A stretch of DNA of 64,000 nt from Paragordius varius (GCA_964247055.1 OZ176059.1:1116001-1180000); one strand, 5' to 3'; positions 15,301 through 62,078 are shown, numbered from the stretch's first letter. A program made the numbers and translations. Notes: a model not told the origin generated them from the sequence alone.

Positions 15301-15476
15301 GAGGTTGGGATATGATCGGATTGTTGGGTAAAACGGTATTTGGAGTTGTTTCTAAATAATATGTGAAATCATATAAAAAATATACCATTCGTATTATCAA
15401 TCTGAATAGTGGTATCAACTGTGGTAGAATTTTGTTTAGATTGGCTTTTGTCCGAATCAGATCTTAAATCAGTCAT
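9205..15476 (-). CDS. NDFIP: NEDD4 family-interacting protein (NDFIP1/2-like), 321 aa, 6 coding exons
   Basis: Exons 15476-15386, 15351-14959, 14678-14584, 13711-13579, 12133-12009, 9333-9205; phases 1,1,0,1,0; 966 nt. Three PY motifs (PPDY, PPPY, LPTYEEA), GSDTAF..FIFNWIGF..LAGRCGALAGFGLS..KW, and C-terminal LWWFLIILG..KGSIQY. Confidence 0.93.
9368..9638. mobile_element. Family B MITE
   Basis: TATA-CCATTTACAATTCAAATTCACCC ... GGGTGAATTTGAACTGTAAATGG-TATA with 21-bp AACAATTCAAATTCACCCTT(G/A) units. Confidence 0.85.
10201..11932. mobile_element. Family B MITE split by a ~1.4-kb foldback insertion
   Basis: B left half 10201-~10300 and right half ~11760-11932 are colinear with the intact copy 51168-51474; between them lie inverted arms ~10311-10895 and ~11250-11745. 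Confidence 0.75.
12170..12650. repeat. Three diverged ~150-195-bp tandem units in NDFIP intron 4
   Basis: GCCATAGATCATAGAAAT at 12280, 12475 and 12623, each preceded by TAAAC(A/G)GCAAATTT. Confidence 0.7.
13113..13338. mobile_element. Family B MITE
   Basis: CCATTTACAATTCAAATTCACCC ... GTAAATGG with TATA flanks. Confidence 0.8.
13855..14230. repeat. Dispersed repeat family G with terminal hairpin
   Basis: Homologous to ~38646-38960, ~54225-54575, ~55755-56260 and ~56285-56640 (CATCTAACATTGATAGAA; GGGGTATTTAGATACCCC hairpin); no TIR pair seen. Confidence 0.65.
14380..14547. mobile_element. Family B MITE, internally deleted
   Basis: Both TA-CCATTT termini with TATA flanks; 36 nt from the donor of NDFIP exon 3. 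Confidence 0.8.
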
Positions 15477-26690: not shown

Positions 26691-27615
26691 TTCTAAACCC
26701 AAAATATTATCAACAAAGATTTTACATTTGTGTTAAATTACAATAAAAGATTAAATTTATACTGAGAAAATGTAATTACTTAAATACAAATATTTTTTTA
26801 AAACAACATTACTGTTTAAACCTTAATTCTTTTTAATAAATTATATAATTAAAATTGTCAATTTTATAAATTAGTATTTTAGATTTTTGCGACTCGAAAA
26901 AGTTAGGTTATATTAAAATAACATAGGTATAAAAAAATATATAGCGTATAATATCACATTTATAAATCGTAAAATTGTTTCAGTATTGTTGAAGTTAAAT
27001 AAAATCAATCATATCAGGGCTATAATATGAAAAATAAAAGGTATAAACGCCCACGTGTTGTCTGAGGGTAAAACATTTTAAAATATTTAACACTTTTTTG
27101 GCTTGAGTTATAATAACCTTCAAATATTGTATAGACTATTAGTTATATATCTTGTTCATATTAAGTAAAATAAATTTACCAAATCAGGAGATTTACATTA
27201 CTGAAAACAAAACACTATTAACTAAAAAATTTAAAAATAGAAAACATTTACCTTAGTTTACTATACAACATTAATATAAAGAGGCATTTGTTAACTTGAA
27301 ATGTAAAAAATATAAAAATTTAGTTTTTTGTATAAAATATAAATAACGCTGGACAAAGTTTGTTAATTTTGGGATTATAATCTAACTAAATTTAATGAAT
27401 TTTGGATTTTTACGAGTAATCTTTGATAACGAACTTAACAAAAAAAATTGAATACGAGTTTTATGAAATATTAATTTTTCTTATATTCTAATTAATTAAA
27501 ACTCCAATAAATTTGTCAAATATTGAATAATAATACTTTGTAATGCCCCTGCGATTTAAAATACAGTTACAAGAGTTATTATTAACTATTTCGGAATTAT
27601 AATTAGCTAAAGCGG
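26691..27615 (+). repeat. ~925-bp direct duplication, copy 1
   Basis: Nearly identical to 37716-38645; I count about 8 differences by eye. Confidence 0.92.
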
Positions 27616-31472: not shown

Positions 31473-32087
31473 CTAATAATTAAATATTTTCGTCACACCT
31501 CTATAAATAAATATACCGTTTAAGTCAAATATCAATGTTCTATTCCTGTATTTCCTTGAAAGTTTTTTCCAGCCTATTATGTCCCGAATTTCTGCACGGT
31601 GGGCCCCGAAGTCAATTAATGCTTGTAAATGTGTAATTTCTGAAATGTTTAACGAATGAATACTATTGTCATCCAAAATTATATTTTTAATAGATTGATT
31701 ATATGCAGCGCGTGTAAAATCAACGGATCTAATATTACAATCAACTATTTCAAGGGATTTTAAATGCGCCCATTTCTCAAACGGTTGCAAGTCTGTCAAC
31801 CCCGAAACTAATTTTAAATTCAATTTTTCCAAATTATTTTCTTTTTTAAAAATGTCGGGAATGACCCTACAATGCCTGAGGGTCAAAGATGTTAGATTTT
31901 TAGGGAAAGATTGTGCCGAATTAATAATGGTTGTATTTGAAAGCGTTCTGCCTTCTATGGTTAAGGAGCGAATGTTAGGGTATTTTCGTAATATATCAGA
32001 AAAATCATAATGATCTTCCTCCACGTGCAAAATCACTTCTTTCGCGTTTGAATTTTTTGGAGCAGAAGTATTTGTGTATGATTCCAC
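31473..32087 (-). CDS. Leucine-rich-repeat protein (204-aa ORF; true start unresolved)
   Basis: LxxLxL repeats: IRSLTIE, LTSLTLRHC, LEKLNLK, LKSLEIVDCNI, IKNIILDDNSI. ORF begins at GTG right after an AG (possible acceptor); an upstream ATG at 32127 is one base out of frame. Confidence 0.65.
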   Translation of the reverse strand: MESYTNTSAPKNSNAKEVILHVEEDHYDFSDILRKYPNIRSLTIEGRTLSNTTIINSAQSFPKNLTSLTLRHCRVIPDIFKKENNLEKLNLKLVSGLTDLQPFEKWAHLKSLEIVDCNIRSVDFTRAAYNQSIKNIILDDNSIHSLNISEITHLQALIDFGAHRAEIRDIIGWKKLSRKYRNRTLIFDLNGIFIYRGVTKIFNY

Positions 32088-32245: not shown

Positions 32246-34978
32246 CAGGGGTGGCCACACTTTTTTTGTCGCGAGCTTTTTTTGGCTTTTTTGTTAAAAA
32301 AGAGTTCGCGGTCACCCAGAAATATTTATCAAAAAAACTCAATCAACACTTTAAACGATGTATATACCTGCTTTACAGATTAGAGTGACTTGTTTAAACC
32401 ATTTTAAAATTGTAATTTTTTTATCTATCAACCAAATTAAAAAATAATTTAAATTAAAAGACAACGGGTTATTAACTACCTTAATTTTTTAACCAACATA
32501 AAACACTTCAAAATATTTATTTATTAAATTTCTATTATATGAAATTTTACAATATAAAAATTTAAACAATGCATTTGAAATTACAGGGGAGAATACATTA
32601 TGATACAAAAAATAAAAGAAATAAAAAATAGCATTCCAATTTAGAACCATAATTTGAACATAAATAAGAGTACATTAAAATTGTATCCGTTTTAATTCTA
32701 TCCACATATTTTTTAGTAAATCGGCTTTTTCCTAAGCGAAAATACAACTCGATAAACATCCATATTTAATAAAGAAAAAAATATTTAAAACGCCCGACTG
32801 CGAAAAAAATCAGAAAGTTTATCTAAATTAGGTTCAAATGAAGTCAAAGCAATTCTCAAACATGATTCTAAATGTTTATTAGTTAATTGTGACCTCTGCT
32901 TAGTTTTGATAGCATTCATAATTGAAAAAGCCGATTCACATAAATATGTGGATCCAAAAAAAGAATTGAATAATGCAGCGGTTTTCCAAATATGGGGGTA
33001 TTTATCTTTATTTATAAATTTATATATATCTGATCCTAATGATTTTAGATGAATATCGCATTTAACATTTATTAATTCCTCTTCCAACTCTGCTAAATTT
33101 GGTACACCAAGAAAGTGGCTGAGTTTTTGAGCAATATATTCAACATTATTATTATTATTAAATGGGCATGATAAAAAAATAGCGATGTCTTCAAGTTTAT
33201 TTATAGATGAAAATCGTTTTTCAAAATCATTAATAAGCAGACCAATATCATCTGCATATTTTTCAAAAGAGAGATTCTCTATTTTTTCAGACACCGCTGC
33301 CAGATTAAAAAAATGTTTTAAATCTCGGTTTTTTAATTGTGTTTCTACTACTGTTAGTGTTTCCTTAAAAGATTTTAGACACCCATCATATCCATTATTG
33401 TTTTTTCTTTTCCTTGTAATTGGATGTTTAATTTATGCAATTTTTCCGTGATATAAAAATGCAAGATCAAGCAGCCAATCTTGATCTTTCAATTCAGGGT
33501 ATGAAAATTTAGAATTCTCTAAAAAAATTTCTATTTGTGGTAAAAGTTGCCTAAATCTAATTAAAAATGCGGCACGACTCAACCACCTTACATCAGTATG
33601 TAATAAAAGTTCTCCATATTCCACGCCGCACTCATTTAACAAAATTCGAAATTGGCGGCGGGACAAGCTTTTTGTTCGAATGGCGTTAACAATTTTAAAA
33701 CAGGGGTTCATTACATGATGGTATTTTAAAACTTTTGAACATAAAACTTGATTATGGATTATACAATGGTAATCAATGAACTTGGGAAATGCACTGTGAT
33801 TTTTACATAAAGCGATAAAGCCGTTGTTAACGCCAATCATAGCTGGAGCTCCATCAGTAGTTATAGATGCGAGTTTTACGATGGGAAGTTTCGTATCTGT
33901 GATAAATTTATAAAAAGAATCAAAAATATCCTGCCCTCTGGTTCGTTCGTGGAGAGGTATTATAGTTAATAATTCCTCCTTTGCAGATAAATCACTAAAT
34001 ATCATACGAATAAAAATGCATAATTGGGCGATTCCAACATAATCAGTGGACTCATCGAGTTGCAAGGAAAAAAAATACAGTTATTAATATTTTCATGTAA
34101 AATTTCATCAAGATTATTACTAATATCTTCAGCCCTGCGCATAACGGTATTTCTCGATAAGCTTATGCTTTTAATAGCTGTCATAATATTATTTTTGTTA
34201 TCAAAATTTTCAAATAAAATATCACAAGCGCTAATAAAGGCTTCTTTAAATATTTCACCATCTTGGAATGGCTTATTGTTCCGAATGAGTATCTCCGCTA
34301 CCTTGAATGAAGCAATCGTAGGATTTTTATAGTCTTTGTTGTATTTAAGTATGCTATTTTGTGAGGCGGATAATTGTTCTTTTAATTCCTTTACTTTAAT
34401 GTTGCGTTCTTGAGTTTGTAAGGGGTAGTTTTTGGAGTAATGTGGATGCAGAGATCTATAATGTCTTTCAATATTTGACTTTTTGGGCAAAGCAACAGTA
34501 CTATTGCATATTAGACAGGTGCATGTTTCATTTATCATAATAAAAAAGTATTCATGCTCCCAATCTTTCTTGTATCTGTACAACTTTTTTTGGCTCATTC
34601 TAAAATATAAGTTTTAAAAACCTACTTTTGGTGTATCAAATCAAATCTAACTTCACGATTATGCTTCTGATTTATGAATAAGCTTTGCTTAAAGTTTTGA
34701 TATATTCAAGGGAAAAGACTGATTTTAAGTTTTAATGCAAATGCTCCAAAACATATGAATTATAATTAATAAAATAATTTTTTTACACCCTTTTCTTAGA
34801 CGTTTTTTTTTTAATTTAAACCGTATTTTTTTGTATTTTAAATTTAAATTCGCTCAGAAGTAGCCAACTATCCGAAAAAAGTCAATAAACTTTTTAAAAA
34901 AAAAATATTTTCAGGCGGTCACTTTTTGAGTTGTCGCGGTCACGAAAGTGACTGCGGTCACCTCGTTGGCCACCCCTG
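32246..34978 (-). mobile_element. Full-length hAT transposon (Buster/SPIN, GTF2IRD2-like) with frameshifted transposase
   Basis: TIR CAGGGGTGGCCA; perfect 8-bp TSD TAATATAG (32238-32245 and 34979-34986). Transposase 34598-32785: Zn finger (CLIC..RHYRSLH), LDESTD, TTDGAPAM, HCIIH, RWLS, FGSTYLCESAFS; three frameshifts (~34070, ~33450, ~33400). Confidence 0.95.
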
Positions 34979-37715: not shown

Positions 37716-38645
37716 TTCTAAGCCCAAAATATTATCAACAAAGATTTTACATTTGTGTTAAATTACAATAAAAGATTAAATTTATACTGAGAAAATGTAA
37801 TTACTTAAATACAAATATTTTTTTAAAACAACATTACTGTTTAAACCTTAATTCTTTTTAATAAATTATATAATTAAAATTGTCAATTTTATAAATTAGT
37901 ATTTTAGATTTTTGCGACTCGAAAAAGTTAGGTTATATTAAAATAACATAGATATTTTTAAAAAAATATATAGCGTATAATATCACATTTATAAATCGTA
38001 AAATTGTTTCAGTATTGTTGAAGTTAAATACAATCAATCATATCAGGGCTATAATATGAAAAATAAAAGGTATAAACGCCCACGTGTTGTCTGAGGGTAA
38101 AACATTTTAAAATATTTAACACTTTTTTGGCTTGAGTTATAATAACCTTCAAATATTGTATAGACTATTAGTTAGATATCTTGTTCATATTAAGTAAAAT
38201 AAATTTACCAAATCAGGAGATTTACATTACTGAAAACAAAACACTATTAACTAAAAAATTTAAAAATAGAAAACATGTACCTTAGTTTACTATACAACAT
38301 AAATATAAAGAGGCATTTGTTAACTTGAAATGTAAAAAATATAAAAATTTAGTTTTTTGTATAAAATATAAATAACGCTGGACAAAGTTTGTTAATTTTG
38401 GGATTATAATCTAACTAAATTTAATGAATTTTGGATTTTTACGAGTAATCTTTGACAACGAACTTAACAAAAAAAATTGAATACGAGTTTTATGAAATAT
38501 TAATTTTTCTTATATTCTAATTAATTAAAACTCCAATAAATTTGTCAAATATTGAATAATAATACTTTGTAATGCCCCTGCGATTTAAAATACAGTTACA
38601 AGAGTTATTATTAACTATTTCGGAATTATAATTAGCTAAAGCGGT
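37716..38645 (+). repeat. ~925-bp direct duplication, copy 2
   Basis: Matches 26691-27615; an older diverged partial unit lies at ~37500-37715. Confidence 0.92.
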
Positions 38646-41133: not shown

Positions 41134-44100
41134 TCACAAAGTTGATATTGTGATAGTTTTGATCTGAGTAAATGGGGTTAATGACGCATCTCCGCCCGGG
41201 GGACAGCTACTTCCTGTCGAGTTAAAACCACTTCCAAACGAACAATTTTCATGCAGGGCCGAATAACAATTTGTACTAGAATCCAAAAAAAATATATAAT
41301 GATCATTCATAATATAACACATTTAAGTTATTATTTAAACTTTTACGAAAACTGTAAAACAACAAAGAAAAGCCTGGTAATTTTACTAAAATGTAATTTT
41401 AATTATCTAACCGATATGATACGTTATTAAGGCTTTGAAAAATGGGGTTATGAGTTACTTAATCCCATATTTAACAAATACCTATGTGAAAAATGATGGT
41501 AAATAAAACAACATGAAATAAATTGATGTTTCTAACTTTATAACTCATTTTTCTAATTAAATTTTAGAATCCCCATTTTCAAATTTTACATTCCTCTTAT
41601 ATTAGTATGTATATATAAACCAGACAATTCTGCATAAGAAAACTTTTAAATTTAACAAAAATATGGTTATCACGTTTTATACCTGTCTGTAATTTTAGAA
41701 TTTTTATGTAAAAATAAATCAAAACCAAATATTTTTAATCCTGAGTGCAGATGCGATCATAAGTATGCGAGAAACATCATTGGTCAAAACTCCAGCTGAC
41801 GATATATATGTTGTGTCTAGGGAAGCATTTATGCGTTCAATCACCTCATCAGCTGTTTTGAAACAACTTATTAATTGCACCGGTCCCAATATCTTGGACA
41901 AAATAATAAAAATGAAATACATAAGTTAACCCATTATAATAAGGCACATATTTTAAAGAAACTGTATCACATTTATAAAATATATTAATATATAATATTT
42001 AATTAAGGAGTAAAAATGGAAAGACGATCTTTTTCAATAATTTTTGATATATATCTGTATTTTTCTGTTAAAAATAAAAAATGCATCATATAGTGTTATT
42101 AGAAATAATCTGTAATGATAAACATAAGCATTAGTGGCCATATTAATAACTTTTCACATTTAGTAAATTTTCAAAAAAAATATGTATATATATATATAGC
42201 CATGACTGATTATGAAAAAAAACGGTCATTTTTTTTAAAAAAAGTTAAAAATTTAAAAATATATTTTTTTCTTATAGTATTTACGATGATTATGGTTGTT
42301 TAACATAAGTTTAAATTTAATTAATCCAATGCTTTACATCTACGAATCAACCCTACCCTAAACCTTTTTATTTAGGCAAACAAAAAATTTAATTTACAAA
42401 AAAAATTAACAGAATCTTTCTTGGATTATTCAATTTGTTGTTATATAACAAATAAAAACTCAAATTTTCACGTTACATATTTTTATTAACATATTCTTTA
42501 TTTGTACACAACTTTACGCAAAATTGCTTTTGAAAATACGGTTGGTTAACTTTATAATAGGAACTGAAATTCTTTTTTTTATTTTACTTGTTAAAAATAG
42601 TAGCCCTATATAAAAAACTTAAATTTTACTTTAAATACCCCTTTTTTCTTTTAGCAAAACTTTATTATAAAATGCAAATTCAATTAACATAAAAACATTA
42701 AAAGATACAGTAAAATTTAAATTATACGGACAAAACCTAAAAATATAAAGACAAATGTTCGATTCTAAATGACAACCATAATTTTTAAACTTCATTCATT
42801 AAAAAAATAACTCATTATTTTAAATTGCAACGTATATGTATATATTGGTTAAACAATCAATTATATTATATTTTATTTGTAACTATATATTTTATATGAG
42901 AAAAAACTATTTATAAAAGTATGGTTGTCTTTTAGAAAAAAATATTTGTCTATAAATAAGAATTTCAGTTTTTACTGTTAATATATGTTTTATACCTCTT
43001 CGCTTGTAATAGACATGGTATCAGTAACTTCGCTAAAAACCGTAGGTTGCATGAAATAACCCTTACCATCTATTCGATGGCCCCCTACCTCAAGAATTGC
43101 ACCTTGTTCTATGCCCATTTCAATTTGATCACATAACTGATCACATGAACGTTCACTAATCTACATAATAATCGTAATAATCGCAATAAAAAATCATCAA
43201 AGTTGGATGGATGGATGGATATATACAGTAATCAACATTGAAAATGTATAGAATTTAAAAGACAAATATATATTTTTTTTTGAAATAGAGATAATCACAC
43301 TTGTCTAACCTTAATACTTAACACATAAAATAATTTAGTACAATTTTGATATATATATATATATATATATATATATTGCGTGTTAACATTTGACACCGTT
43401 GTTTTTAATATTGAGACCCAAAAACGGTATATATATATATAAATAAATTAAGGTTTAAACAATATGGTAGTAGGTTGTCTTTTTAAAAATATTTGTCATT
43501 TATTATTTTTATGTGATTTGTCTGTATAATTTCATTATTAATCTAAATCTACTCCCCGGTTAAATTTAAAGTCGGTTTAAGAATTTAGTTGTTTTACATA
43601 AACGCTGCTGTAGAATTTCAAAATAAATGCTTGACTTTTAACTTAAATTTTAGGTTTAATTATAAAATTGCATGATGATCAATATAAGCTTAAAGTTTAT
43701 TATAGGGAGGAGGGGGGGGGGGGTCCACGGTAATCGAAAAAAAATATATATCATTTTTAAACATTTTTGTTTATTAAAATCTATAAATTATTAAAAACCC
43801 CAGGGATGGTAGTATCTTATGAGTTAAAGTTAAGATCAGAAAAATCTGAATATCTTTTATTATTTGAAACATTGAAAAAGATACCACGGTGTATATGGCA
43901 ACTTTTTGGATATTGTAGCGTTTTAAATAAATTAATCAATGAGAATTTAACAAAAGATTACTGTTTATATGATATATAAAAACAAATTTTAACATTTTTT
44001 ACGACAAAATTCCACATAATCGATAAACTAAAAAAGTTCAAAAAAATCTATAGTATATTTAGGAAATACCTGTGGTCCAAAACTTTTATTCGTGTCAAAC

Positions 44101-45356
44101 GGGTCACCCAACGCATCCGTTACGAGTTTAAGGGCCCGATCGCGAGACTTTATAACGAAATCTTCGTAAATGGTTTCTTGAACATAGGTTCGATTTCTAG
44201 CGGTTTTACTTTGTCCTTGGTTAGCGAAGGCGGCATCTTGGGCCTTTTGTACGGCAAAATCAACTATATTTGGATAAAATAAAAAGTAAAAGACAAACAA
44301 ACATTTATTAACATTTATCATTTATACTTACTACTTTCTTAAATTTTTTGATATAATTTGCACTTCAAGAGTGTCTTTGAACTCAAGTTTGGTCTTTCAA
44401 CGCTTCAAGTTGGTCTTTAAAATTTTAAGTTTTGATTTAACTAAATTTTTGCACTGTTTTTTATTTAGAAATCACTTTTTAATTTTTTCTAATTTGGCAA
44501 AATTATAAGCTTATTTATATATTATTTAAATTAATATTCAATGAATAAATAAAGATATACGTTTCTGAATGATTAAAAGTTGATATTGATTTAAAGTTTT
44601 TGTTAAATAATAGAAAGTAGGTTAAAAACGATAAAATGATGAATGATATACGATGTGATTGATAAAAGTTATTTAAACAAAACAATTAATATCAAGGACC
44701 AACTTGAAGTGTTCAAGGACACATAAAATATATAAAATAGTACACTAATATTCATATTTCACAATGATGATTATATATAGGTCATTTAAAATATATTAAG
44801 GATCAATATATATTTATATATACGGTTTTATATTTTTTTATTATATAAATTACTGTCAAAAAAATAAGATGGGCAAAAAGTAAGAATTTTTGAATGAAAT
44901 TACCATTATATTTTATTTGTGTCATGTCTGTTAAGAAAATGAATTTATGATATCGATATAATAAATATATTGATCTATTATTTATTTATATAAATAAAAA
45001 ATTTTTTAATTTTTGCCAATAAATTTTATGTAACAAATTTAAAAATTATAATAGCGATATAATAAATATATTTAGCTATTAATAAAAAAAATTCAAATTT
45101 TTGTGAATAAATTTTATATAACAAATATAAAAATTATTAATGTATAAATATTCTAATCTTTAAACTGACAATCATTTTACTGTACAAGATAATATTATAA
45201 AAGTGATGTGAAACTTTTTTTTAGAAAATATCTAAATAAAGAAGCGTACCATCAACATCATCAAATATAATGGTAGGACTTTGGCCAATTATTTCAAGTA
45301 ATATACTTTTGTTGATACTGCTTTCATTAGCAGCCTTGTGTATTTCCTTACCAATC

Positions 45357-45406
<50 letters not shown>

Positions 45407-48400
45407 GCATTAAATGGTTGCTTATTTCACACTATAGTAGGGGGCAATTGGCAACACAGTAGTGTATGGGAAAACACAACAAAATGTTGAATAAACAATC
45501 TTTTCCTTTCTTTTTTTCCATACCCTACTGGGTTCGAATTGCCCCCTACTATAGTGTGAAATAAGCAACCATTAAAATGCATACTGTATATTCATGAATA
45601 GATAAATTATTTATTTATATATTATCATATAAATAAATAGAATTTAAATTTTTATTTTATAAAAGTATAAAAAAATATTTATTTATTTTATTATATAATA
45701 GAGCACACAAACTTTTTCTTCATAAAACCTTAAAATAATAAAAAATATATTGTAATAGCATATTATTAGGAAATAGTAACATCCAGTGACTAATTCCTAA
45801 TTTCGCAAAAAAAATCAATAAATATCAAACTGATTGATTCTACTTTGATATTTAAATAATTATATATTACGTTACCAATTTCCTTTAACAAAGGATTAAA
45901 AAAGTATAACTGCTGCCTTTATACATGTCCAAATTCTACTACGTTTTTGTCTCTTTATAACTTTATTAAAAAATTCATTTATCAAATTTATTAAGGATAT
46001 GATAACCAATAAAAAATTAAATATATAAATATTTATTAAATTTGAGGAATTTATTTATAAAAAAATTCAAAACAATTTAAATTTTAACCTTAGCAGTACC
46101 AGCGTATGATAAGAGAGCTACTTTGGGGTGTATAGCAAGGGCTTTGTTAGCAACTTCACCCAAAGAGGGGACCACACTCAAAACTCCGGGCGGGAAACCA
46201 GACTATATAAATATATAACCATTTAGAGTTCAAATTCACCCTTAAACAATTCAAATTCACCCTTGAACAATTCAAATTCCCCCTTAAACAGTTTATATTC
46301 ACCCTTAAACAATTCAAATTCCCCTTTAAACAATTCAAATTCCCCCTTAAACAATTCAAATTCACTTTTAAACAATTCAAATTCACCCTTAAACAGTTCA
46401 AATTCACTTTTGAACAATTCAAATTTAAACAATTTAAATTCACCCTTAAACAGTTCAAATTCACTTTTGAACAATTCAAATTGACCCTTAAACAATTTAA
46501 ATTCACCCTTCAATTCAAATTCACCCTTTAACAATTCTAATCAAGTATTTTTTAAGATTAAAAATTAATTAAATTTTTTATCATTTAAAAATAAAATTTG
46601 TTTAAAATTAAAATATGACTGAAAATTTAATAGACTGCCCCCCATCAAGACATATTTCATATTAATAATGAGTTATATTAACCCGAAAACACATAACTTT
46701 TTTAGGAGGGTGAATTAGAAATGTAAATGATATATATGTATATGTAAATAAAAGTAAAAATGAATATTAAAAATTGATTAATTAATTATATGGGTAAAAA
46801 GTGATATACATGAATATTATAAACTCTTTTTTCTTAAAAATTTTTTGGCATAAATTGGAAAAAAACTGTACAGCTAATAAAAATATAAATGTATAAATAT
46901 AATTTATTAAAAAAACCAAATTTATAATGTTCTCCCCATTGGTGGAGTAATCCAAAGTATGGTCATGTATGTATTTTTACAGTTAAATTAAAATTTTATA
47001 TTTGCTATTTTATTTTATCAATATTCTATACCTATAGCTGATAAAAACATTTTTATTTTTCAAAATTACAAAAAAATGTATAATTTAAATATAATATAAG
47101 ACCTGTTTTAATAGATGGGCCAGGTATAAACTGGTGAGTGTAGTTTCCTCAGCGGGTTTTATAACTACGGTACAACCGACCGCTATAGCGGGTGCCATTA
47201 CATTTATAAACATGACGATTGGATGGGTATGCTATGTTATATAAAAAATTATGTTTAAAATTTTAATGCACAGTAATAATATAATTTTTATAGTAAAAAA
47301 AAGATGAAATTATAAAATGACAAATTATAAAAACTAAAAGACAAATTTATCCAAAACCAACCATACTTTATAAATACTTTTTTCTGAAAATCTATATAAT
47401 TACAAATCAGTATGTGATTAAATGTATTACTAATTTACATCTCTAATCCATGTTTTTGTAACCAAAAACACAATATAATTATACTAAATAAATTAAGGTT
47501 AAAACATATGACTCTTTCCTGACTTCAAAAGCCAACATGTTTTGTCTCTATAAATTTAATACCTATGAAAAAAAGAACTATCATTTTTAGTAGTTTAATT
47601 CAAATTTTTGGATTCAAAAAAACTCTCTTAATTTAATTTTTAATAAATATACCATTTTACAATTCACCTTAAATAATTCAAATTAACCCATGAACAATTG
47701 AAAATTCACTTCAAGATTATATGTTTTGTAAGATTAAAAATAACCTATATTTTTATATATTTTTTAAAAAAAGGTTTTGTTTAAGTTTAAATAATACTGA
47801 AAAAATTAATAAACTATGCCATGAAGATATATTTTATATTAATAATGAGTTAAATTAGTTCGAAAACACATAATTTATGTTTAGGGTGAATTTGAACCAA
47901 TTGTTCAGGGTGAATTTAAACTGCTCAAGGGTATATTTCAAAACTGATTTTCAAAAATTCCTTCTTTAAGAATTCAAAACCATTTTTAAATCATAATTTT
48001 ACTGGTAAAATAGCTGCGACAACTCCAATGGGTTCCCGTTTAGTGAAAGAAACAAATCCTAAACCATTGCATGTCCCTGTACCAGGTAGCGTTTGCCCCG
48101 TTAATTTATCACACCATCCTTATGTGGAAATTAAAAAAATTAAAATTATAAAAATTAAAATTACTTTAATATGCTAAAAAATATAATTTTATTGAATATA
48201 ATTTTGAGAATATATATTAAATCAAAATCTAAGCATAAATATAAAAAAAAATCCAAGCTTAATTATAAAAAAAACATATAAAAATATAAATTTAAGGGGA
48301 AAATAGAAAAAATGATAAATGCAATAAAAAATAAAGTAAAAAATATAAAGACAAATCATAGGCTAAAAAAAGGGCTATATTTTTATAAAAAAATAATTTC

Positions 48401-51400
48401 AACCTTGATTCTTTGGAATTTATAAAACTTATTATAATTTTATGTTGCATAATATAATATAAAGTCATATAGATGTAAATTCAAATAACTAATTGTATTT
48501 ACAGTTGTGAATTAATTATAAATAAAAAACATTAAAAAATATTGTACAGAATAAAATAATTATAATGTTAAATTTATTATATAATCATACAACAAAAAAA
48601 GTGTTATGCTACTATTTTTTCAAGAAAATAAGTCATATTTTTTACATTTATTATATTTTACCTATATATAAAGAATGGTGAAACATAAATTAAATTAATT
48701 ACCAATATTATTTGAAAAATATTGGAAAAAAACATATTTTTTGTCTGTAATATTCCACACAAAAAAATAAGAGAATAAAATTTTCGACCATTAGTTTTGG
48801 TGTATATGTAATAAAAAACCTGCATAATATCTCAATGTTTCAGTTGCATGTAACGTTTCAGTTACCGCTTCTTTAAACGGTTTCCCCGCATCCAATGATT
48901 CTAAACTCTGTAATAAAAAAATAAAAATAAAAATTTTTTTATTAGTTGTCTATTTTCAATGCAAATAATAAATAAAGACTGTTTCTTTGCATAACCAAAA
49001 AAAATTTTTTTTGTAATTAAATGTTGTTATATGGGTGTTAAATGTATAAAATTATTGGAAACAGCTTTATCACTCCCATTACCTTTTGGGGTATTTTTAT
49101 ATCCCAATGCCATTTATAATTTCAATAACTTAAAAAGTATTTAAGGTTGTAAGCCGAATTAAAAAATATGCTTACTTTAGCCTTTTAAACATATTATACA
49201 AAAGTTTTTTAGAAAAACGTAAAATTGCAAAAAATCCCCGTCTAAACACATTTTTTGCCGCCATTCTTTTCAATAATTTATTTAAATCGCTAATGCAACA
49301 GACAAATATATGTATATTATGGTTGCGAAAATATAAATAATTAACTTTAAAGAGCTTTTAGGCTATATTTTATCAGCAAAAACTTGATATATTTTGGTTT
49401 TAATATCAGCTGTTAATTTCCTTCGTGTTTTGGAGCTGTCCCAATTTTAGGCTCTAAAAGTCACAAAACTCCAAAAAATATAAGCTTTTTCATCTAATAC
49501 AGAGAACAATGTTTGATAAAATTTAGTTAAAACTGTAGTTTATTTGAAATTGAGCTCGGGGACATAAAACTACCCCAAAATGTATAAAATAGGACGAAAA
49601 AAGAGTAAAAAGGCAATAAAGTGTTATAATAATATTACGTTATAAGACAAATATTTTAACTTTCATTGTACTTATTAGGCCTTTGTAAATATATATTATT
49701 TTGAAGGATCATTATTATAAAAATAAAAAATAAAATATACCGCTAGAAGCGATGTATTTTCCATCATTAGGTCCGCTAAACGCATCATAAGAGCGGCCCG
49801 ACGAGCGGGTGTAACACCACGCCACAATGAACGCGGTTTGAAGGCCATATAGGCTGATTCGACTGCCTCATCAATATCCTCCTATATAATGTATGAAAAA
49901 TATGATGTTACATACAGTAAGTATATTATGGATATGTGTATATACCATTTACAGTTCAAATTCACCCTTAAACAATTCAAATTCACCTTGAACAATTCAA
50001 ATTCACCCTAAAAATAAATTATGTGTTTATGAACTAATACAACTCATTATTAATATGAAATATATGTTTATGGTATAGTTTATGATTTTTTCAGTATTAT
50101 TTTAATTTAAAACAAAATTTTTATTCTTAAAAAAATATATAAAATATAGGTGTTTTTAATCTTAAAAAACATATATTTTATTTGAGAGTGAATTTGAATT
50201 GTTCGAGGGTGAATTTGAATTGTTCGAGAGTGAATTTAAATTGTTTAAGGTGAAATTGAATTGTAAATGGTATATACAACTAAGCTTGTTTTTTAAAAAA
50301 AAAACATTTTTTTATTCTTTTATGGACTTATAATGTTTTATGCCATACGCTACTGTAAAAACATAAAAAAAGTGAAAAAAGTAATATATTTTTTACTGTG
50401 TGACACTATAAAATCTATCCTTTTTCCATATGTACAGTAAATACTGAACATTAAAAAAAGGAATACAGTAGCGTATGGCATAAAACATTATGAGTCCATA
50501 AAAGGATAAAAAATGTTTTTTTTAAAAAAACAACAAGCCTAGTTGTATATACACATATCCATAATACCCCTTGTTTTTTTAAAAAAACACATTTTTTTAT
50601 TTTTTTATGGATCAATATTGTTTTATGCCATACGCAACTGTATATTTTTTACTGTGTGACACTAAAAACTATCCTTTTTCCATATGTACAGTAAATACTG
50701 AAAATTAATATCAAGTATTTTAACTAATAAATCCTAATGACATGAGATTATTGAAGCTATTGTAATACAAAAATTAAAAATGATACGGGGGATATTTTAA
50801 ATTACTTGATATTTATATATTTTGATTTACAGTAATCTCGATTAGTTTTATAAATGATTATAGAGATGTGATAACATACTTTTAATTTATTTTATTAATA
50901 AAATTTGTATTTACAGTAGCGTATGCAGTAAAAGATTGTTAGTGCAAAATAATCTTAATAGGGGGATATTATGGATATGTTTATAAATAGGACTTTAATA
51001 TATGAAAATTGTCCCCCTGTTTTGTGTTCATTAAGATTATTTTGCACTAACAATCTTTTACTACATACGCCACTGTATATAGATCAGGGAAATATCTTCG
51101 CGGATGCTTTAATAATTTTTGGTTATTTTTTTTTTCATTTATTTTAAGCCGAATTCTGGATGATATACCATTTACAGTTCAAATTCACCCTTGAACAATT
51201 CAAATTCACCCTAAAAATAGATTATGTGTTTTCAAACTAATATAACTCATTATTATTAATATAAAATATATCTTTATGGCATAGTTTATTATTTTTTCAG
51301 TATTATTTTAATTTAAAACAAAATTTTATTTTTTAAAAATATATTAAAATATAGGTAATTTTTAATCTTACAAAACATGTTATTTATTTGAGGGTGAATT

Positions 51401-54400
51401 TGAATTGTTCAAGGGTTTTGAATTGTTCAAGGGTGAATTTGAATTGTTTAAGGGTGAATTTGAACTGTAAATGGTATATATTTTCTAAATCATCAGGGGT
51501 GGTGTCCAACACAAATGGCTTCCCGTGTCGTAATTTAAACACGAAAAAAAACGGCAAACCGCATTGGAAATAAATATATGCGCCTTCACATATAATGTAA
51601 AATTGTAAAATGCACAGGAATATAACATTTTTTTCTAATTTTTACCAAAATTGAATAGATAAAATTAGAAAAATCGTCTTAGAATTGTAAATGTTAATTT
51701 TACTAAGATTTATAAGCATGAGTTCTCGTAAACCCGTGTGTTGGTCACCCCTCTTCGAAATAATGGTAATAATTAAATAGTTTATTACTTTTTTTAACAT
51801 TTTTTAGAGCACACATTTGCGTACATTGAAAAAAAGCGTGTTGGACATCCCTGATATAAATTACAATGTTCACAATATATGGCCAAGGGTGGCCTTTAAA
51901 AGATTAACATTAATTAACTATATTAATTTCAACAGATGAGAGAACTAATTAAATTATAAACTACAAAACACTAATGTATATAGATATCAATATTCCTTAT
52001 TTTACAAATCAACATGATAGATTACATATAGATATTTAAAAAAGTTTTAAAAACTATCTTTCCTTAGATAATATTTGTCTTTGGGTTTTTGCGTTTTGTC
52101 GTTATAATTTTAATGATGAATTTATTGTAAAAATGTGAAAATAACAATAATAATAATATAAGGGTAAGTAATTAATTTAAGGCAAAAAACCTATTTTGTT
52201 CTTTCCATATATTTTTTACCATGATTACATTGGGTTGAATTAGGGAATAGAAATTTTTATTGATAACCTACACTCAGTTTTATAATTGTAGCCCATATAG
52301 CTAATGAAAATGAATCGAAAAAAAAAATGTTCTTATCCATTAAATAAATACTCATTTTTTATCATTTTTTATAGAAATTATTAATTCCGGTTACATTTAC
52401 TTAACATTAAATTGGAACGATGTAAAATTTATAGTTTATCTTTTATACTGCATTAATAAGGTTAGATTATATTATTCAAGTTATATTTAACATATCAGGT
52501 TATTCAAATATTATCCTTTAAGAAATTCATTAATTAATACATTGCAAAATAATATGTCTTATATGTATCAGAATAATAAACCATTTGATATGCTTAAACC
52601 TATAATCTAAAAACTGAAATTATACGGGCAAAACGTAAAAATATAAAGACAACTATTTTATTCTAAAAAACAACCATACTTTTTTAAATATAAATTTTTC
52701 CCATTTAAATGATTTATTTACAATTATTAAATATATGATTGATAGTGTTACCAATATATCTTTCTATTTCATACTTTGCAATTTTATTAAAATTGTAAAA
52801 AATCAAGATTTAAAAAGTATGGTTGTCTTTTAAAAAAATATGTTTATCTTTATATTTTTTTGTCCGTATAACTTCAATTTCAATACGGCAATATACGCAA
52901 TCATACTAAATTAGATTGTAGATGGATTAATAATTATTAAAATATAATAAAATTATTACAATTCGTTCGTATTTTACAATATAAATTAAATCTTAAAAAA
53001 AACCTGGCCTCCAATATCAATTTCACAAATTTTTTCTTCAGTGGCAGGGTTTCTCGTACTCATTTTTCCGCCCTTTATAGCATCGTGCCAATCATTGTTG
53101 TAAAAAATCTAGAATTATCATAAATTAGTCATATCAAACATCTCGTTTTCATGAAAAAATGGTAAATTTTTGTATTGACAGTTCAAATTCACCCTTAAAC
53201 AGTTCAAATACACCCTCGAAAAATTCACCCACAATTCAAATTCACCCAGAACAATTCAAATTTAACCTAAAATAAATTAGGTGTTAATAAATTGTTCAAA
53301 ATTAAAATAATACTGAAAAATAATAAACAATGCCAAGATATATTTCATATTAATGATGAGTTAGTTATATTAGCCCGAAAACACATAATTTATTTTTGGG
53401 AATTTGAATTTTAAATGGTATATATATATATATATATATAATATGTATATTATATATATGTATATTAGTTGTATAAAATAAACTATTTAAACCTCAAATA
53501 TACCCTAGTACAACAAATTCACCCTAATAAATGATGTGTTGAATTAATATAACTCATCATTAATAGCTATTTCTTTAATTTTTTTAGTATTATGTTAATT
53601 TTAAACAAAATATTTTTTATAATAAAAAATATAGGTAATTTTTATAATTTGAAAACACATCAATTATTTTGGTAAATTTGAATTGTTCAAAGGCGTTGAA
53701 TTGTCCAAGAGAAAATTTGAGCTGTATATGATATATATATAAATAAAAATTTCCTTAAATTTTAATTCTTAACAAATAATATCTTTCTTTGTAAAACATA
53801 AATAAAATTTGGATGAAGCCAAATAACTGTAACTGTAAACTAAAATATCATACATCCTTTTAACAATACATGGTTTAGGGATTTAGGAAATAAAATATTT
53901 TCTTGGTATATCTAGTATAAAGAATAAATTTTAATAATATGGTATAAACTTTTATATTAAGTTTTTTTGAGACAAACACCTGATATATTATTTTGACACT
54001 TGGATACAACACATTCATTTTAGTCCTTCGATTCAAATTAGAGTAGTTAAATACCCCAAACCTGCTTAAGATTAAATTCTTTAAAAAATATGGGAGGAAT
54101 CAAAACCATGGCTAAATTTTGCACTTATATAACATTAATAAACCGAAATATATAAAAAAAAATTATTTAAAAATTGATATTACTTTTTTAAGCTAAAACC
54201 AAAAGGTAAAAATTTACTCAACGTGGTATGTCAATGGTAAAATTGACAAATTGAAAAATAATACAAAAACCGCTTTTTGTAATTCTATCAATGTTAGATG
54301 TAATTTAAATAAAAAAATAGCTTTTATTTAACCCTTAAAATTAAATATAGACGATATTTTGCAAAAAATTTGTAAAATAAAAATGGCGTTGAAATAGTTT

Positions 54401-55239
54401 GATATGAAACTTTTTATTCAAAACAAAATTAGATATTTTGGCATGTTTGTAAAATTTCTATTAGGATAGAAGCATAAATTTAAATTGGACCGTTTTTTCG
54501 GTAGTTTTTTAAAAATCCTAACTCAAATTTAGTCTGGGGTATTTAGATACCCCAATTTGAATCGAAGTGTTGATACGTCCAGACCAAACATTTTAAATAA
54601 TAAAATCGTATATAATTATTCATATAGTTTGTTAAAACACACGATTTTGAGCATCCCATATTTAATTAAATTTAATTTCTAACACAACAGATATAGAGGC
54701 TATCTAATCACAATTTACACCGAATGGATTATTTAAGTAGTGTTAATACAGCTTTAATACTATTTAAATTGGATTTTGAACAAGCAATATAGATACGCTT
54801 TCCTAAAAAATAGTTTTTATTTGCCAACTTTCTAACAAATAAAATATGTCAATTTTAAGTTTAAGAAATTGCTAAAATTTCAAATTTTTAAATTCGATTA
54901 AAACTCTATCAAAAAAATTATTTTTGTGAAAATCACGCCAAAAATCTACCAAAAAAGGAAATCATTAATAAACAAATGAAAAATACAAGTTGATTTGTTA
55001 AATTTATATACTACTTATGTTAATATACAGAATATTATTTTTGAAATGCAAAATATAATTATAATATGTTATAATTACATAAAGCATTAGAGAAAAATTT
55101 TATATTTAAATATTAATACTTTGGTAAAAGGTTTCAAGTTTAAGACCGGTTTAATAACACCACTATCACTGCCAGTAGAAACATTGGTGCTACTTACTGA
55201 TGGCGTAATATTTAGCGTGTTGAGATTTGGATTGGACAT
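41134..55239 (-). CDS. ALDH: ALDH1/ALDH2-family protein, 528 aa, 12 exons, predicted catalytically inactive
   Basis: Exons 55239-55120, 53108-53004, 49881-49741, 48907-48820, 48118-48003, 47231-47103, 46202-46089, 45355-45250, 44263-44070, 43160-42996, 41892-41726, 41275-41134; all GT-AG, phases consistent, 1587 nt with no stop. Motifs [51 protein letters not shown]. Confidence 0.93.
42708..42977. mobile_element. Family E MITE in ALDH intron 10
   Basis: TA-CAGTAAAATTTAAATTATACGGAC ... TTTTTACTG. Confidence 0.7.
44355..44722. mobile_element. Family A MITE, right end truncated
   Basis: ATTTGCACTTCAAGAGTGTC left end with family A body. Confidence 0.75.
45405..45582. mobile_element. Palindromic MITE (family K)
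   Basis: ~45-bp near-perfect arms AATGGTTGCTTATTTCACACTATAGTAGGGGGCAATT and its reverse complement. Confidence 0.75.
46219..46730. mobile_element. Family B MITE with expanded 21-bp array
   Basis: About 14-15 tandem AACAATTCAAATTCACCCTTA units at 46225-46535; source of the three spurious ORFs here. Confidence 0.85.
47652..47935. mobile_element. Family B MITE, degenerate
   Basis: CCATTTTACAATTCACC left end, family B body, eroded right end. Confidence 0.7.
49050..49600. repeat. Dispersed repeat family L
   Basis: Inverted homologue of 7060-7400. Confidence 0.65.
49945..50270. mobile_element. Family B MITE nested in a family J MITE
   Basis: Complete TIRs; TATATA on both sides; matching empty site at 50543-50560. 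Confidence 0.88.
50464..50642. mobile_element. Family J palindromic MITE (TA-CAGTAGCGTATG termini)
   Basis: TACAGTAGCGTATGGCATAAAAC ... GTTTTATGCCATACGCAACTGTA; relatives at ~49913-50357 and 50913-51077. Confidence 0.75.
51168..51474. mobile_element. Family B MITE, intact reference copy
   Basis: TATA-CCATTTACAGTTC ... GAACTGTAAATGG-TATA. Confidence 0.88.
51494..51853. mobile_element. hAT-type MITE
   Basis: CAGGGGTGGTGTCCAACAC ... GTGTTGGACATCCCTG; 5' part matches 986-1020. Confidence 0.65.
53175..53418. mobile_element. Family B MITE, degenerate; another decayed copy at ~53530-53730
   Basis: 21-bp units and right terminus AAATGG-TATA. Confidence 0.7.
54225..54575. repeat. Dispersed repeat family G
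   Basis: Inverse of 56285-56640; ends in GGGGTATTTAGATACCCC hairpin followed by AATTTGAATCGAAGTG. Confidence 0.65.
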
Positions 55240-58889: not shown

Positions 58890-60347
58890 TCTATATATTT
58901 ATAAAAATGGAAAATGCTGGCTTTGTGATCTGTTTCCAAAACCGGTAGACCCATTCAAATCCAAATATCGAAAAAATATAATCATAATTCCCCGACAATG
59001 GCTTCGCTCTTTTTTTAATCAGGCCCCCAGTTCGGGCCCACCCCCTGTGAAAAATGGGTTTTTTTGAAAACAGAAGTTCACAAAAATCGTGTCTTTGATA
59101 CAATTTTCCGGAGAACGCGTTGGACCACTTAATTTCAAATATAATATATGTTTAGTTATTTTCGATTGCGCCGAACATAGTCGTCTCGCTTTAATTTAGG
59201 CCCTCTTTTTACCCGCTCCCCCCGTAAAATGCCATTTTTTTCAAAAAACAAAGTGGACAAGAATAATTTTTTGATTCTATTTTTCGCCCAAGGTATGAGA
59301 CCGTAAAAATTCAATAAGGATTCCACTTATTCGCTGTTAAAAAGCAAAAATTTTAGTCAAGCGTTTCTTTGATGATAGTTGCTGAGTAAGGAGCTACTCG
59401 CGAAAAACTGACCCGTCATATCGAAATAGCGTGCTTTTGGGGTTAAGTTTCAGAAAACCTATCAGGCCATATGAGTTCAATATCTGCTTAAAATATTAAC
59501 CGTAACAAGGCAAAAATTTAGATCGTGCGGTTTTTTAAAATTAGCCGTTAATTAGGCCCTTCACGCCCGCGCCACCATAGAATGATTTTAATTTGAAGCA
59601 ATTTTTCCAAAAAATAAGAGCATATGGAACCAATCATGATTCCAGGTATTCTCCGCATAAAGGCAAAAATTTTAATCAAGCGCTTTTTTTGTATCAGCCT
59701 CTGGGTAGGGAGCTACCCGCTAAAAACTGCGCCACTATATAATATTTTGTTTTGGAAATATTTTACAGAAAACTTATGCCATATGAGCTCATTTAAAGTT
59801 CGAAATATTACCCGTAACTAGGTAAAATTAAGGTCAGGCCTTTTTTTATTGGCCGTTAATTTGGGGCCTTTATGCCCTAAAAATACGCCAACACATAACG
59901 ATTATCTAGTGTTGAATTTTTTTTCAAATAACTCATGAGATGATGGTCTCAAAGATGATTCCAATAATTTCCCTGTAAAGGCAAAAAATTTAACTTACCG
60001 TTTTTTACATATAGGCCTATGGGTAGGGGTCTACCGGTTTATAACTGAGACGCCATACAAAAATGGCGTGGCTTTGGAGCTAATTTTCAAAAAACTTAAG
60101 AAGCCATATGAGTTAAATAAAGGTTTATATTACCCATAAAAAGGTAAAATTTATAGTATAGCGGTTTTTTCCGTTAGCCGTCAATTTTTTGCCCCAGTAA
60201 ACAATATATTAATATGAATGCACCGTTTTGAAAATCCTATTAGATCATAGTTATTAAATAATGTTTCAAAATAATCCACATATATGGATCATTTTATTGT
60301 CCCTTTTTTCAAATAGCCCCCCCCCCGCAGCACGAGATTTACACTAG
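58890..60347 (+). mobile_element. Non-autonomous Helitron with internal tandem units
   Basis: A|TCTATATA 5' end and CTAG|T 3' end after a GC-rich stretch; reverse-complement homologue of 20501-22381. Confidence 0.8.
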
Positions 60348-60359
60348 TATATATATATA

Positions 60360-61790
60360 CCATTTTTCATGCAAAAACATCATTTTTTCAAGCAAACGCA
60401 CCATTTTTTCAAGCAAAGGCAACAATTTTTCAAGCAAATGCAACATTTTTTCAAGCAAAGACAACATTTTTTCAAGCAAACGCAACATTTTTTCAAGCAA
60501 ACGCAACATTTTTTCAACCAAATACAACATTTTTTCATCCAAACGCAACATTTTTTCAACCAAAGACAACATTTTTTCAAGCAAAAACAACACTTTTTTT
60601 AACATTACAAAGAATTACTATTTATTGTTAATTATAAATTATTTATTAAATTTTAAGTTAATGTAATTTATTTTTAGCGTTAAATTATGATTTTTATCGT
60701 TTTATCAGCAATATTTGATGGTAAAATTGATTTTCAAACATTTTGATTTTGCCCATAAATTGCCTTATTTATTTATATTAATTATATTTTTCTTTTACAA
60801 TTTTAGTTTCGCCTATAATCAATTTATATAATTTTCACTTCAAGAGTGTCTTTGTAAGTTTAAAGTTGTCCTTCACTTTGTTTTTAACTTTTATTAATTA
60901 AATCGAAAATAATTTATCTATTTTATTGTTTTTAACCTATTTTCTATTATTTAACATAAATTTTAAATCGATATCAACTTTTAATCTTAGAGAAACCGTA
61001 TATTAATTAATAATTTTAGATATTTATAACACGAAAAAAATATATGAGTTTTCTGGGTTATTAGAAATTTTTCATTAAAAACATTAAAAGTTAATAATTT
61101 TGTTCAATTAAAAAAAATATTTTGAAATAAAAAAGTGGTTTTTCAAAAAATTTTAAATGGATAAATACATAATAAATAAAGAAAATTAGGTTAATAAATA
61201 ATAATATTAAAAAATAAATGCAAAAATTAGGGTAAAACAAAATTTATAAATTTTAAGACCAACTTAAAGAGTTCAAGGATCAACTTGAAATGTTCAAGGA
61301 CCAACTTGAAGTGTTCAAGGACACTCTTGAAGTGCAAATTAAATAAATTGATTATAGGCGAAACTAAAATTGTAAAAGAAAAATATAATTAATATAAATA
61401 AATAGGGCAATTTATGGGCAAAATCAAAATGTTTGAAAATCAATTTTACCATCAAATATTGCTGATAAAACGATAAAAATCATAATTTAACGCTAAAAAT
61501 AAATTACATTAACTTAAAATTTAATAAATAATTTATAATTAACAATAAATAGTAATTCTTTGTAATGTTAAAAAAAGTGTTGTTTTTGCTTGAAAAAATG
61601 TTGTCTTTGGTTGAAAAAATGTTGCGTTTGGATGAAAAAATGTTGTATTTGGTTGAAAAAATGTTGCGTTTGCTTGAAAAAATGTTGCGTTTGCTTGAAA
61701 AAATGTTGCGTTTGCTTGAAAAAATGTTGCCTTTGCTTGAAAAAATGTTGCGTTTGCTTGAAAAAATGATGTTTTTGCATGAAAAATGGT
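60360..61790. mobile_element. Family C foldback element with ~470-bp TIRs enclosing a family A MITE
   Basis: TATA-CCATTTTTCATGC ... GCATGAAAAATGG-TATA; arms have 11 (left) and 10 (right) 21-bp CATTTTTTCAAGCAAACGCAA units plus a ~225-bp inner domain that differs at only a couple of positions. Confidence 0.9.
60830..61340. mobile_element. Family A MITE forming the loop of the foldback
   Basis: CACTTCAAGAGTGTC ... GACACTCTTGAAGTGCAAA with family A body. Confidence 0.8.
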
Positions 61791-62078
61791 ATATAACCCT
61801 ATTTTGGGGGTATTTCATAAAGACCAATATTTCTTTATATAATTCACATGATCTAAATAAGGTTTTTTATTTTTTTAATACTCGTAGTATTGAATATGGA
61901 GTGCTAAAATAACAACAAGGGAAATTTTAAAATAATTTTAATTATAAAATCTAATTATCCATAATTTTCATATTAAAAGAAGTCATCTTAAGATTCCAAA
62001 AGTCATATATGTTAAGTGTTATTCAATGTAAATAAAACACAATTTTTGCATTATTTTCAGTATGATGCATTATATTTA

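Follow-up and report, generated by a model that had tools for sequence, protein, structure and literature searches.

The stretch of Paragordius varius DNA analysed here (GCA_964247055.1 OZ176059.1:1116001-1180000, 64,000 nt in full and called the window below) carries on its minus strand, from 55239 to 41134, an intact gene whose product is most probably a pseudoenzyme with the aldehyde dehydrogenase (ALDH) fold, in which catalysis by the standard mechanism was lost and which purifying selection has kept for a non-catalytic role. In the proposed scheme, the ALDH fold would be maintained while aldehyde oxidation by the standard mechanism was given up; the Lys that now stands in the place of the nucleophile (Lys326) would most plausibly be paired with the retained Glu292 (Glu268 of ALDH2), plugging the old active site, and the product may act as a binding or scaffolding protein, by analogy with ALDH16A1 or the ALDH-derived crystallins. 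Non-catalytic ALDH folds are already known from ALDH16A1 and the lens crystallins, and their roles are poorly understood. An ALDH1/2-class member under selection, with its nucleophile and oxyanion hole replaced and its cofactor site and dimer network remodelled, would amount to a natural experiment on the non-catalytic uses of the fold. For the genomes of such parasites, the gene also bears on whether repurposed dead enzymes accumulate there, and on whether ALDH1/2 activity survives at all in the animal.

A first-pass annotation of this DNA had described an intact gene of 12 exons and 528 codons, and an independent reconstruction from the sequence arrived at the same structure: one frame of 528 codons across 12 exons, with no internal stop and no frameshift, and 11 introns that are all GT-AG (22 of 22 splice dinucleotides intact), in an animal genome that is very AT-rich. 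Every motif singled out earlier was found again, namely the 11-residue loop with Lys, (P)HTHP at 47231-47220, YAGTA, LEIIGQS, EEILGP and a remodelled tail of ten residues. Residues are given in ALDH2 numbering, obtained by subtracting 17 from the index of a ruler sequence. The exons, in order of the reading frame, are:

Exon 1, 55120..55239, minus strand: start codon ATG at 55239; codes for an N-terminal extension rich in Ser, Thr and Asn; closes with LKPFTK, this 3' end aligning with the ALDH1/2 IKYTK start; donor GT in phase 0, its intron at the conserved position 21/0.
Exon 2, 53004..53108, minus strand: IFYNNDWHD...IGGQ; followed by intron 56/0, common to Lottia and Trichoplax.
Exon 3, 49741..49881, minus strand: EDIDEAV...TSLLA; Pfam Aldedh match at 1.6e-06.
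Exon 4, 48820..48907, minus strand: an 11-residue opening segment, then on to RYYA(G); donor at ALDH2 position 134, phase 1.
Exon 5, 48003..48118, minus strand: WCDKLTG...VVAAILP; carries a 5-residue insertion.
Exon 6, 47103..47231, minus strand: acceptor at the conserved intron position 167/0; opens with HTHP where WNFP is expected, giving W168H (47231-47229), N169T (ACC, 47228-47226) and F170H (47225-47223); VVIKPAEE retains K192 and E195.
Exon 7, 46089..46202, minus strand: SGFPPGV...YAGTAK, the Rossmann region; G223S, P226E, G229N, F243Y, T244A and S246T, with G225 and G245 retained.
Exon 8, 45250..45355, minus strand: IGKEIH...LLEIIGQSP...; R264S, G270I and K272Q, with G250, E268 and G271 retained.
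Exon 9, 44070..44263, minus strand: the catalytic loop within a 12-residue segment; Ser at 301, C302K (AAA, 44207-44205) and C303T.
Exon 10, 42996..43160, minus strand: ISERSCDQ, an internal 11-residue segment and ITSEE; Q349S and K352Q, with E398 and E399 retained.
Exon 11, 41726..41892, minus strand: ILGPVQ...ALRIKNI; F401L, with G402 and P403 retained.
Exon 12, 41134..41275, minus strand: (C) followed by 28 residues, and further on a 13-residue segment, 452C; P464S, K469N, R475C, E476P and E487Q; stop TGA at 41136-41134.

Micro-introns (GT..AG, 21-30 nt) were considered in exons 1, 6 and 9, and none improves the frame; at the catalytic loop none is needed, because the loop, with its flanks NQGQ and a 12-residue segment, is colinear with canonical sequences. 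The window contains no second ALDH copy and no Cys-bearing alternative exon; the alternative exon 9 with CCC that had been raised earlier was looked for across it and is absent. On either side of the gene there are only repeats and ORFs resembling transposons, which leaves no synteny to follow towards a related worm.

The evidence for the loss of catalysis lies in the active-site residues themselves. In the HMMER alignment, GQSKTARNR stands opposite GQCCTAGSR of the solved ALDH1A2; the nucleophile Cys302 is replaced by Lys in a loop without any Cys, and the oxyanion-hole Asn169 by Thr inside PHTHP, both in agreement with the first-pass annotation. That annotation had also listed the equivalents of K192, E195, E268 and E399 as retained, as they are in the alignment, the general base Glu268 being Glu292 in LEIIGQS. 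Among the relatives, C302 is present in all 106 full-length sequences and N169 in all 105 that align there, and of the 150 relatives nearest to exon 9, 149 carry the Cys (HMMER search of 1.84 billion representatives). The change C302K is at least three nucleotide steps from any Cys codon, and W168H also takes three. Because the nucleophile and the oxyanion-hole residue are lost and several invariants of the nicotinamide site are altered, the product, judged by its residues, cannot work by the standard thiol mechanism, and in annotation the names "active aldehyde dehydrogenase" and "active retinal dehydrogenase" should be avoided.

It is hardly credible that the key codons owe their state to an error of assembly or sequencing. 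The changes are not isolated, since 54 of 162 near-invariant ALDH1/2 positions (columns at least 95% conserved) are altered and these are spread over all exons, and C302K by itself requires three base changes. Among the sequencing runs listed, two DNA runs contain 80-85% of the 31-mers sampled from a 6-kb stretch, and from the RNA-like runs given for the species these 31-mers are almost completely absent. A run from a second organism contains 41% of the sampled 31-mers.

A more elaborate fate for the pocket was also weighed, in which the substrate tunnel would have been rebuilt into a new ligand site. There Lys326, with His191/His193 as new neighbours and the retained Glu292 beside it, would form a covalent Schiff base with an aldehyde (retinal or a lipid aldehyde, for example), hold a metal or take part in some other new chemistry; if so, the ALDH fold would be a carrier or sensor, not an enzyme. 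The Lys does lie exactly at the nucleophile position, within the old substrate tunnel and next to the retained Glu268, and the tunnel and its neighbours are now polar or His-rich (W168H, F170H, W177N and a His at position 124). However, a Lys-Glu salt bridge is the simpler reading, and an independent dead ALDH1 of a spider, described below, has His at the nucleophile site and Ile at E268; because His is found there, it seems that an ALDH without catalysis is no longer bound to a particular residue at this position. A binder of this kind is accordingly considered quite improbable, and the pairing of Lys326 with Glu292 in a non-catalytic protein is favored.

The cofactor site has been changed as well. 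The first-pass annotation had placed weight on the NAD residues, which holds for K192, E195 and E399, and G225, G245 and G250 are kept too, but many other positions of the NAD(P) site are lost: W168H, T244A, G270I, Q349S and F401L among the holders of the nicotinamide half, G229N (together with A230K) in the adenine pocket, and also S246T and K352Q. In addition, the Arg264-Glu487-Arg475 network at the dimer interface is wholly replaced (R264S, E487Q and R475C). When the link that Glu487 makes to Arg264 and Arg475 is lost, helix alpha-G and the NAD site become disordered (PMC8160307). The loss of the network speaks against cofactor binding of the usual kind and against an ordinary dimer interface, and NAD(H) binding by the product is probably poor or absent, as far as can be predicted from its residues.

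These observations bear on the idea that the protein is a regulatory or dominant-negative subunit, whose tetramers would also include an active ALDH1/2 paralogue from another place in the genome. The fold appears to be retained, 8 of 11 invariants of the oligomerisation domain are still in place, and dead paralogues partner active enzymes in other families, such as the AdoMetDC prozyme (PMC6221367). Set against this are the complete replacement of the interface network and the absence of an active paralogue from the window, and such a role is considered unlikely, though less so than the covalent binder. The pseudoenzyme with a role of its own is again the preferred reading.

Regarding ancestry, the gene is probably an animal ALDH1/2 gene that was vertically inherited, as follows from several lines of comparison. 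Pfam PF00171 (Aldedh) matched above its gathering score in five of the six exons tested, and the matches are colinear, covering profile positions 29-73, 139-179, 251-312, 312-369 and 367-421; exon 12 aligns to residues 447-487 of ALDH1A3. For exons 9, 10 and 12 the best-scoring PDB entries are ALDH1A1/1A2/1A3 and ALDH2, with far weaker scores for SSADH, P5CDH and the remaining ALDH families, and identity to ALDH1/2 proteins is 40-46%. Ten of the 11 introns share both position and phase with the ALDH1/2 genes of Lottia (P0199) and/or Trichoplax (P0221), at 21/0, 56/0, 103/0, 167/0, 210/0, 248/0, 283/1, 344/0, 399/0 and 452/2, the sole unshared one being that of the exon 4 donor (position 134, phase 1). 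Exon 6 has a bacterial ALDH16 (6mvr) in its matches, which is absent from those listed for exons 9, 10 and 12. An ALDH16 would be expected to have about 800 residues and a C-terminal pseudo-cofactor domain; the protein here has 528 residues and an ordinary ALDH1/2 C-terminus. By sequence it is an ALDH1/2-type protein and not an ALDH16, and the earlier assignment to the ALDH1/2 type is thus upheld by Pfam, PDB matches and intron positions together.

The remaining question is what has kept the frame open. GC content is 42% in the exons vs 21% in the introns, and by codon position GC1/GC2/GC3 are 0.49/0.44/0.335 against 0.21 in the introns, GC3 resembling that of other ORFs of the window; none of 2000 intron-derived frames of 1587 nt was open. 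On a FastTree topology, the terminal branch of the protein measured 1.11 vs 0.2-0.36 in canonical sequences, about four times longer, and when branches were fitted per conservation class on 23 sequences, it measured 0.54, 0.73, 0.98 and 1.38 from the most to the least conserved class. The ancestral pattern of constraint is flattened, not erased. Consensus-match ratios are 0.5-0.7 in every conservation class, so that the extra change is spread almost evenly, as strong relaxation would give. In a neutral simulation, the probability of no stop was about 0.017 at 10% amino-acid change and 0 at 33%. The invariants that remain are not a random set of residues: Pro is retained at 86%, Ile/Val/Leu at 83% and Gly at 74%, vs 38% for Lys, 25% for Gln and 0% for Cys. 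Because Pro, Gly and aliphatic invariants were preferentially retained, we infer that the product still folds. Taken from the sequence, the evidence supports an open frame that is not due to chance, with selection having maintained it through a long divergence. The first-pass proposal that selection keeps the fold stands in this respect, branch length, simulation and retention of invariants all speaking for a frame maintained by selection. None of the specific roles suggested along with it, as a structural protein, a dominant-negative subunit or a carrier of retinal on a Schiff-base Lys, finds support in the evidence gathered here.

A young pseudogene would offer another account, in which an ALDH evolved fast while active, was inactivated recently and has an open frame only for lack of time. 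Change at the once-invariant sites is indeed very high, the sampled 31-mers hardly occur in the RNA-like runs, and the searches found no orthologue that shows constraint: when exon 9 was run through HMMER exhaustively, no hit exceeded 57% identity or carried Lys, and querying a word index with the exon-9 ORF yielded no candidate. On this account, however, C302K or N169T, if not both, must postdate the loss of activity, and the simulation, which allowed substitutions only, puts the joint chance of change at a given site without a stop at no more than about 0.6% (q x P(no stop): 0.03 x 0.21, 0.05 x 0.11 and 0.1 x 0.017). Many more active-site invariants are altered, several by two to three nucleotide steps, and 23 of the 54 lost invariants need at least two. 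The splice dinucleotides are all intact and the codon-position GC structure is preserved. Recent decay is considered very unlikely, slightly more so than the Schiff-base binder, and a long-maintained pseudoenzyme remains the favored explanation.

Several known systems can be set beside a protein of this type. The mollusc omega-crystallins (scallop ALDH1A9, and those of squid and octopus) are ALDH1/2-class proteins with a non-enzymatic role and little or no activity. They resemble the P. varius protein in class and in a non-enzymatic role such as the one proposed here, and differ in lineage; Lottia P0199, an omega-crystallin in UniRef, keeps Cys302, Asn169 and Glu268 in the alignment, unlike the protein here. 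In the human variant ALDH2*2 (E487K), the link of Glu487 to Arg264 and Arg475 is lost, while the P. varius protein has substitutions at all three positions; the human variant is a polymorphism of one residue in an otherwise active enzyme, whereas here the catalytic residues are lost too.

A further parallel is the "retinal dehydrogenase 2" of the spider Parasteatoda tepidariorum (XP_071044254, P0027), an ALDH1-type protein with Cys302 replaced by His. EILGP, GNR and a remodelling of the PFGG tail are common to it and the P. varius protein. It lacks Glu268 (Ile), unlike the protein here, and its gene model misses the part from WNFP to the Rossmann region. It is a spider paralogue, closest to spider ALDH1s (identity about 65%) and only about 42% identical to the protein here, and as a query it matched only canonical ALDH1/2; it is read as an independent loss, not as an orthologue. 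Human ALDH16A1, too, is an ALDH fold lacking the catalytic Cys; it is considered a binding protein with no catalytic function and is maintained by selection (PMC10650815; PMC8160307). ALDH16 is a separate family, with about 800 residues, an extra C-terminal domain and the whole catalytic triad missing; by contrast, the P. varius protein has 528 residues, finds its best matches and its introns in ALDH1/2, and retains Glu268.

A colinear run of ALDH-like pieces lies in minus-strand stop-to-stop frames between 55.3 and 41.1 kb of the window, which is very AT-rich (21–32% GC per 2-kb bin). With splice sites set from the sequence surrounding each piece, the rebuilt gene has 12 exons, 11 GT-AG introns of 450–3122 nt each and a coding sequence of 1587 bases (528 codons and a stop), and thus reproduces exactly the exon and codon counts and the start and stop (55239 and 41134) of the first-pass annotation. 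The exons are 42% GC (0.49/0.44/0.335 by codon position) and the introns 21%, other window ORFs have a similar GC3, and none of 2000 intron-derived 1587-nt frames was open. Hidden introns of 21–30 nt were neither needed nor found on checking. Almost none of the sampled words were present in the listed RNA-like sequencing runs of the species; this is at best weak evidence.

The ALDH introns and the surrounding DNA also hold repeats and parts of other genes, as follows.

46229–46541, 49951–50013, 50184–50264, 51391–51468, 53178–53278: 21-bp minisatellite
26691–27222 and 37716–38251: direct repeat of ~530 bp, 97–98% identity, copies 11.03 kb apart
1544–4379, minus strand: rhodopsin-family GPCR pieces, with 7tm_1 matches in ORFs 3009–4379 and 1544–1933
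14942–15418, minus strand: exon with PPxY motifs (PPPY...LPTYEEA)
60339–60605 and 61504–61912: tandem array in two copies, one per orientation, with LEKMLRL / FFKQTQH repeats

The minisatellite (consensus TTCAAATTCACCCTTAAACAA, up to 15 copies) is found in introns 1, 2 and 6 in both orientations, and long spurious open frames with GEFELFK repeats arise from it. The direct repeat flanks an LRR ORF (31473–32087) and hAT-transposase-like ORFs (32785–34598) with a hAT dimerisation domain and a Spin-doc zinc finger; the two copies may have arisen by local duplication or may be LTR-like ends of a large element. The gene of the PPxY exon looks like an NDFIP-type adaptor, with transmembrane exons likely downstream at ~13.6, 12.0 and 9.2 kb; a Pfam search of the exon's ORF gave no match. 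The two tandem-array copies are open in several frames and were rejected as genes, being low-complexity repeats.

Of six ALDH exons tested, five gave Pfam Aldedh matches that pass the threshold and are colinear along the profile. Among solved structures, exons 9, 10 and 12 scored best with ALDH1A1, ALDH1A2, ALDH1A3 and ALDH2, and other ALDH families scored far lower. Exon 6 best matched plant family-2 and ALDH1A proteins. The exons of Trichoplax and Lottia ALDH1/2 genes were mapped exactly, and 10 of the 11 introns share residue and phase with one or both (ALDH2 numbering: 21/0, 56/0, 103/0, 167/0, 210/0, 248/0, 283/1, 344/0, 399/0 and 452/2). Only the intron at 134/1 differs in position, and the 477/2 intron is missing. 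These shared positions make the gene a vertically inherited animal ALDH1/2 gene; a retrocopy, a transfer and an ALDH16 are rejected. The ALDH1/2-type assignment of the first-pass annotation therefore stands on both structural matches and introns. The public 494-residue Trichoplax model (P0221) is stitched over ~20 kb (DS985243.1, 2001–22609) and overlaps a second 494-residue call (2001–7259), because of which it probably joins exons from tandem ALDH copies.

To compare catalytic residues, the window protein was aligned with 106 full-length ALDH1/2 proteins and numbered through the ruler sequence P0265, in which residue number minus 17 reproduces N169, E268, C302 and E399. Position 302 is Lys in the window protein and Cys in all 106 relatives, and position 169 is Thr rather than the Asn of 105/105 aligned relatives; HMMER likewise placed GQSKTARNR opposite GQCCTAGSR of ALDH1A2. 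The Lys for the catalytic Cys, as first read, is thereby borne out, as is the retention of K192, E195, E268 and E399. An exhaustive exon-9 HMMER search of 1.84 billion representatives gave no match above 57% identity, and among the best 150 matches position 302 was Cys in 149 and His in one. Queries with the model and four canonical proteins revealed no other ALDH-like segment in the 64-kb window, so the window offers neither a Cys-bearing alternative to exon 9 nor a WNFP-bearing one to exon 6.

The changes extend well beyond the nucleophile, with 54 of 162 columns conserved at ≥95% altered in a cleaner set of 64 relatives, and 59 of 172 in the 106-sequence set, versus 2 of 172 in a typical canonical sequence. 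They include W168H, N169T, G223S, G229N, T244A, S246T, G270I, K272Q, C302K, Q349S, K352Q, F401L, G449K, W452C, K469N, R475C, E476P and E487Q, plus R264S. Tunnel residues have turned polar (F170H, W177N and a His at position 124). When the Glu487-Arg264-Arg475 network is disrupted in the ALDH2*2 variant, helix alpha-G and the NAD site become disordered (PMC8160307); all three residues are substituted here.

Identity to ALDH1/2 proteins is 40–46%, versus 59–100% (median 65%) among those proteins themselves, and the terminal branch, at 1.11 substitutions per site, exceeds the 0.2–0.36 of the others. When branch lengths were fitted separately in four classes, from most to least conserved, the window gene gave 0.54, 0.73, 0.98 and 1.38, and canonical terminal branches 0.018, 0.14, 0.35 and 0.69. 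Formerly invariant sites thus evolved at ~30x the usual rate and variable sites at only ~2x, with a 2.5-fold gradient persisting across classes. This pattern is that of function-specific constraint that has shifted strongly or been relaxed, with some constraint on the fold left. In line with this, the best-kept invariants are Pro (86%), Ile/Val/Leu (83%), Gly (74%) and Tyr (3/3), and the poorly kept are Lys (38%), Gln (25%), Ser (40%), Trp (33%) and Cys (0/1).

Such divergence might also be that of a decaying pseudogene. In a neutral simulation with AT-biased mutation of the coding sequence, in which indels were left uncounted, the share of runs with a frame still open fell from 21% at 3% amino-acid change to 11% at 5% and 1.7% at 10%, and was zero at 20% and 33%. 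The later of the two catalytic losses (C302K, N169T) must have arisen without catalytic constraint, and the joint chance of a mutated second catalytic site and a still open frame was below ~0.6%. Of the 54 lost invariants, 23 require two or three base changes (three each for C302K and W168H), which with the simulation argues for an old divergence during which the frame was protected all along. Decay is made unlikely by the simulation and the multi-step substitutions. Selection keeping the fold, proposed in the first-pass annotation, agrees with frame survival, class rates and the kept Pro, Gly and aliphatic invariants. On this sequence evidence, we conclude that the protein has probably been made and selected for something besides aldehyde oxidation, and its pseudoenzyme status appears well supported.

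Both standard reactions, dehydrogenase and esterase, depend on Cys302. Changes also affect the nicotinamide half-site and part of the adenine pocket, and the dimer-interface network is replaced. In the simplest structural reading, Lys326 (position 302) would pair with the retained Glu292 (Glu268) and plug the old active site. The earlier suggestion that this Lys may act as a Schiff-base aldehyde carrier is unlikely: nothing supports it, and a spider protein speaks against it. A Parasteatoda tepidariorum protein annotated 'retinal dehydrogenase 2' (XP_071044254, XP_042898276), whose model is without the WNFP-Rossmann segment, appears to be an unrecognised, independently dead ALDH1 paralogue with His for the catalytic Cys and Ile for Glu268, which suggests that position 302 may be free to vary once catalysis is lost. 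With its active site plugged, the Paragordius protein may then be a binding or scaffolding protein, the same kind of putative role as that proposed for ALDH16A1 (PMC10650815; PMC8160307). Catalytically dead ALDHs are an already known kind, to which this gene adds one.
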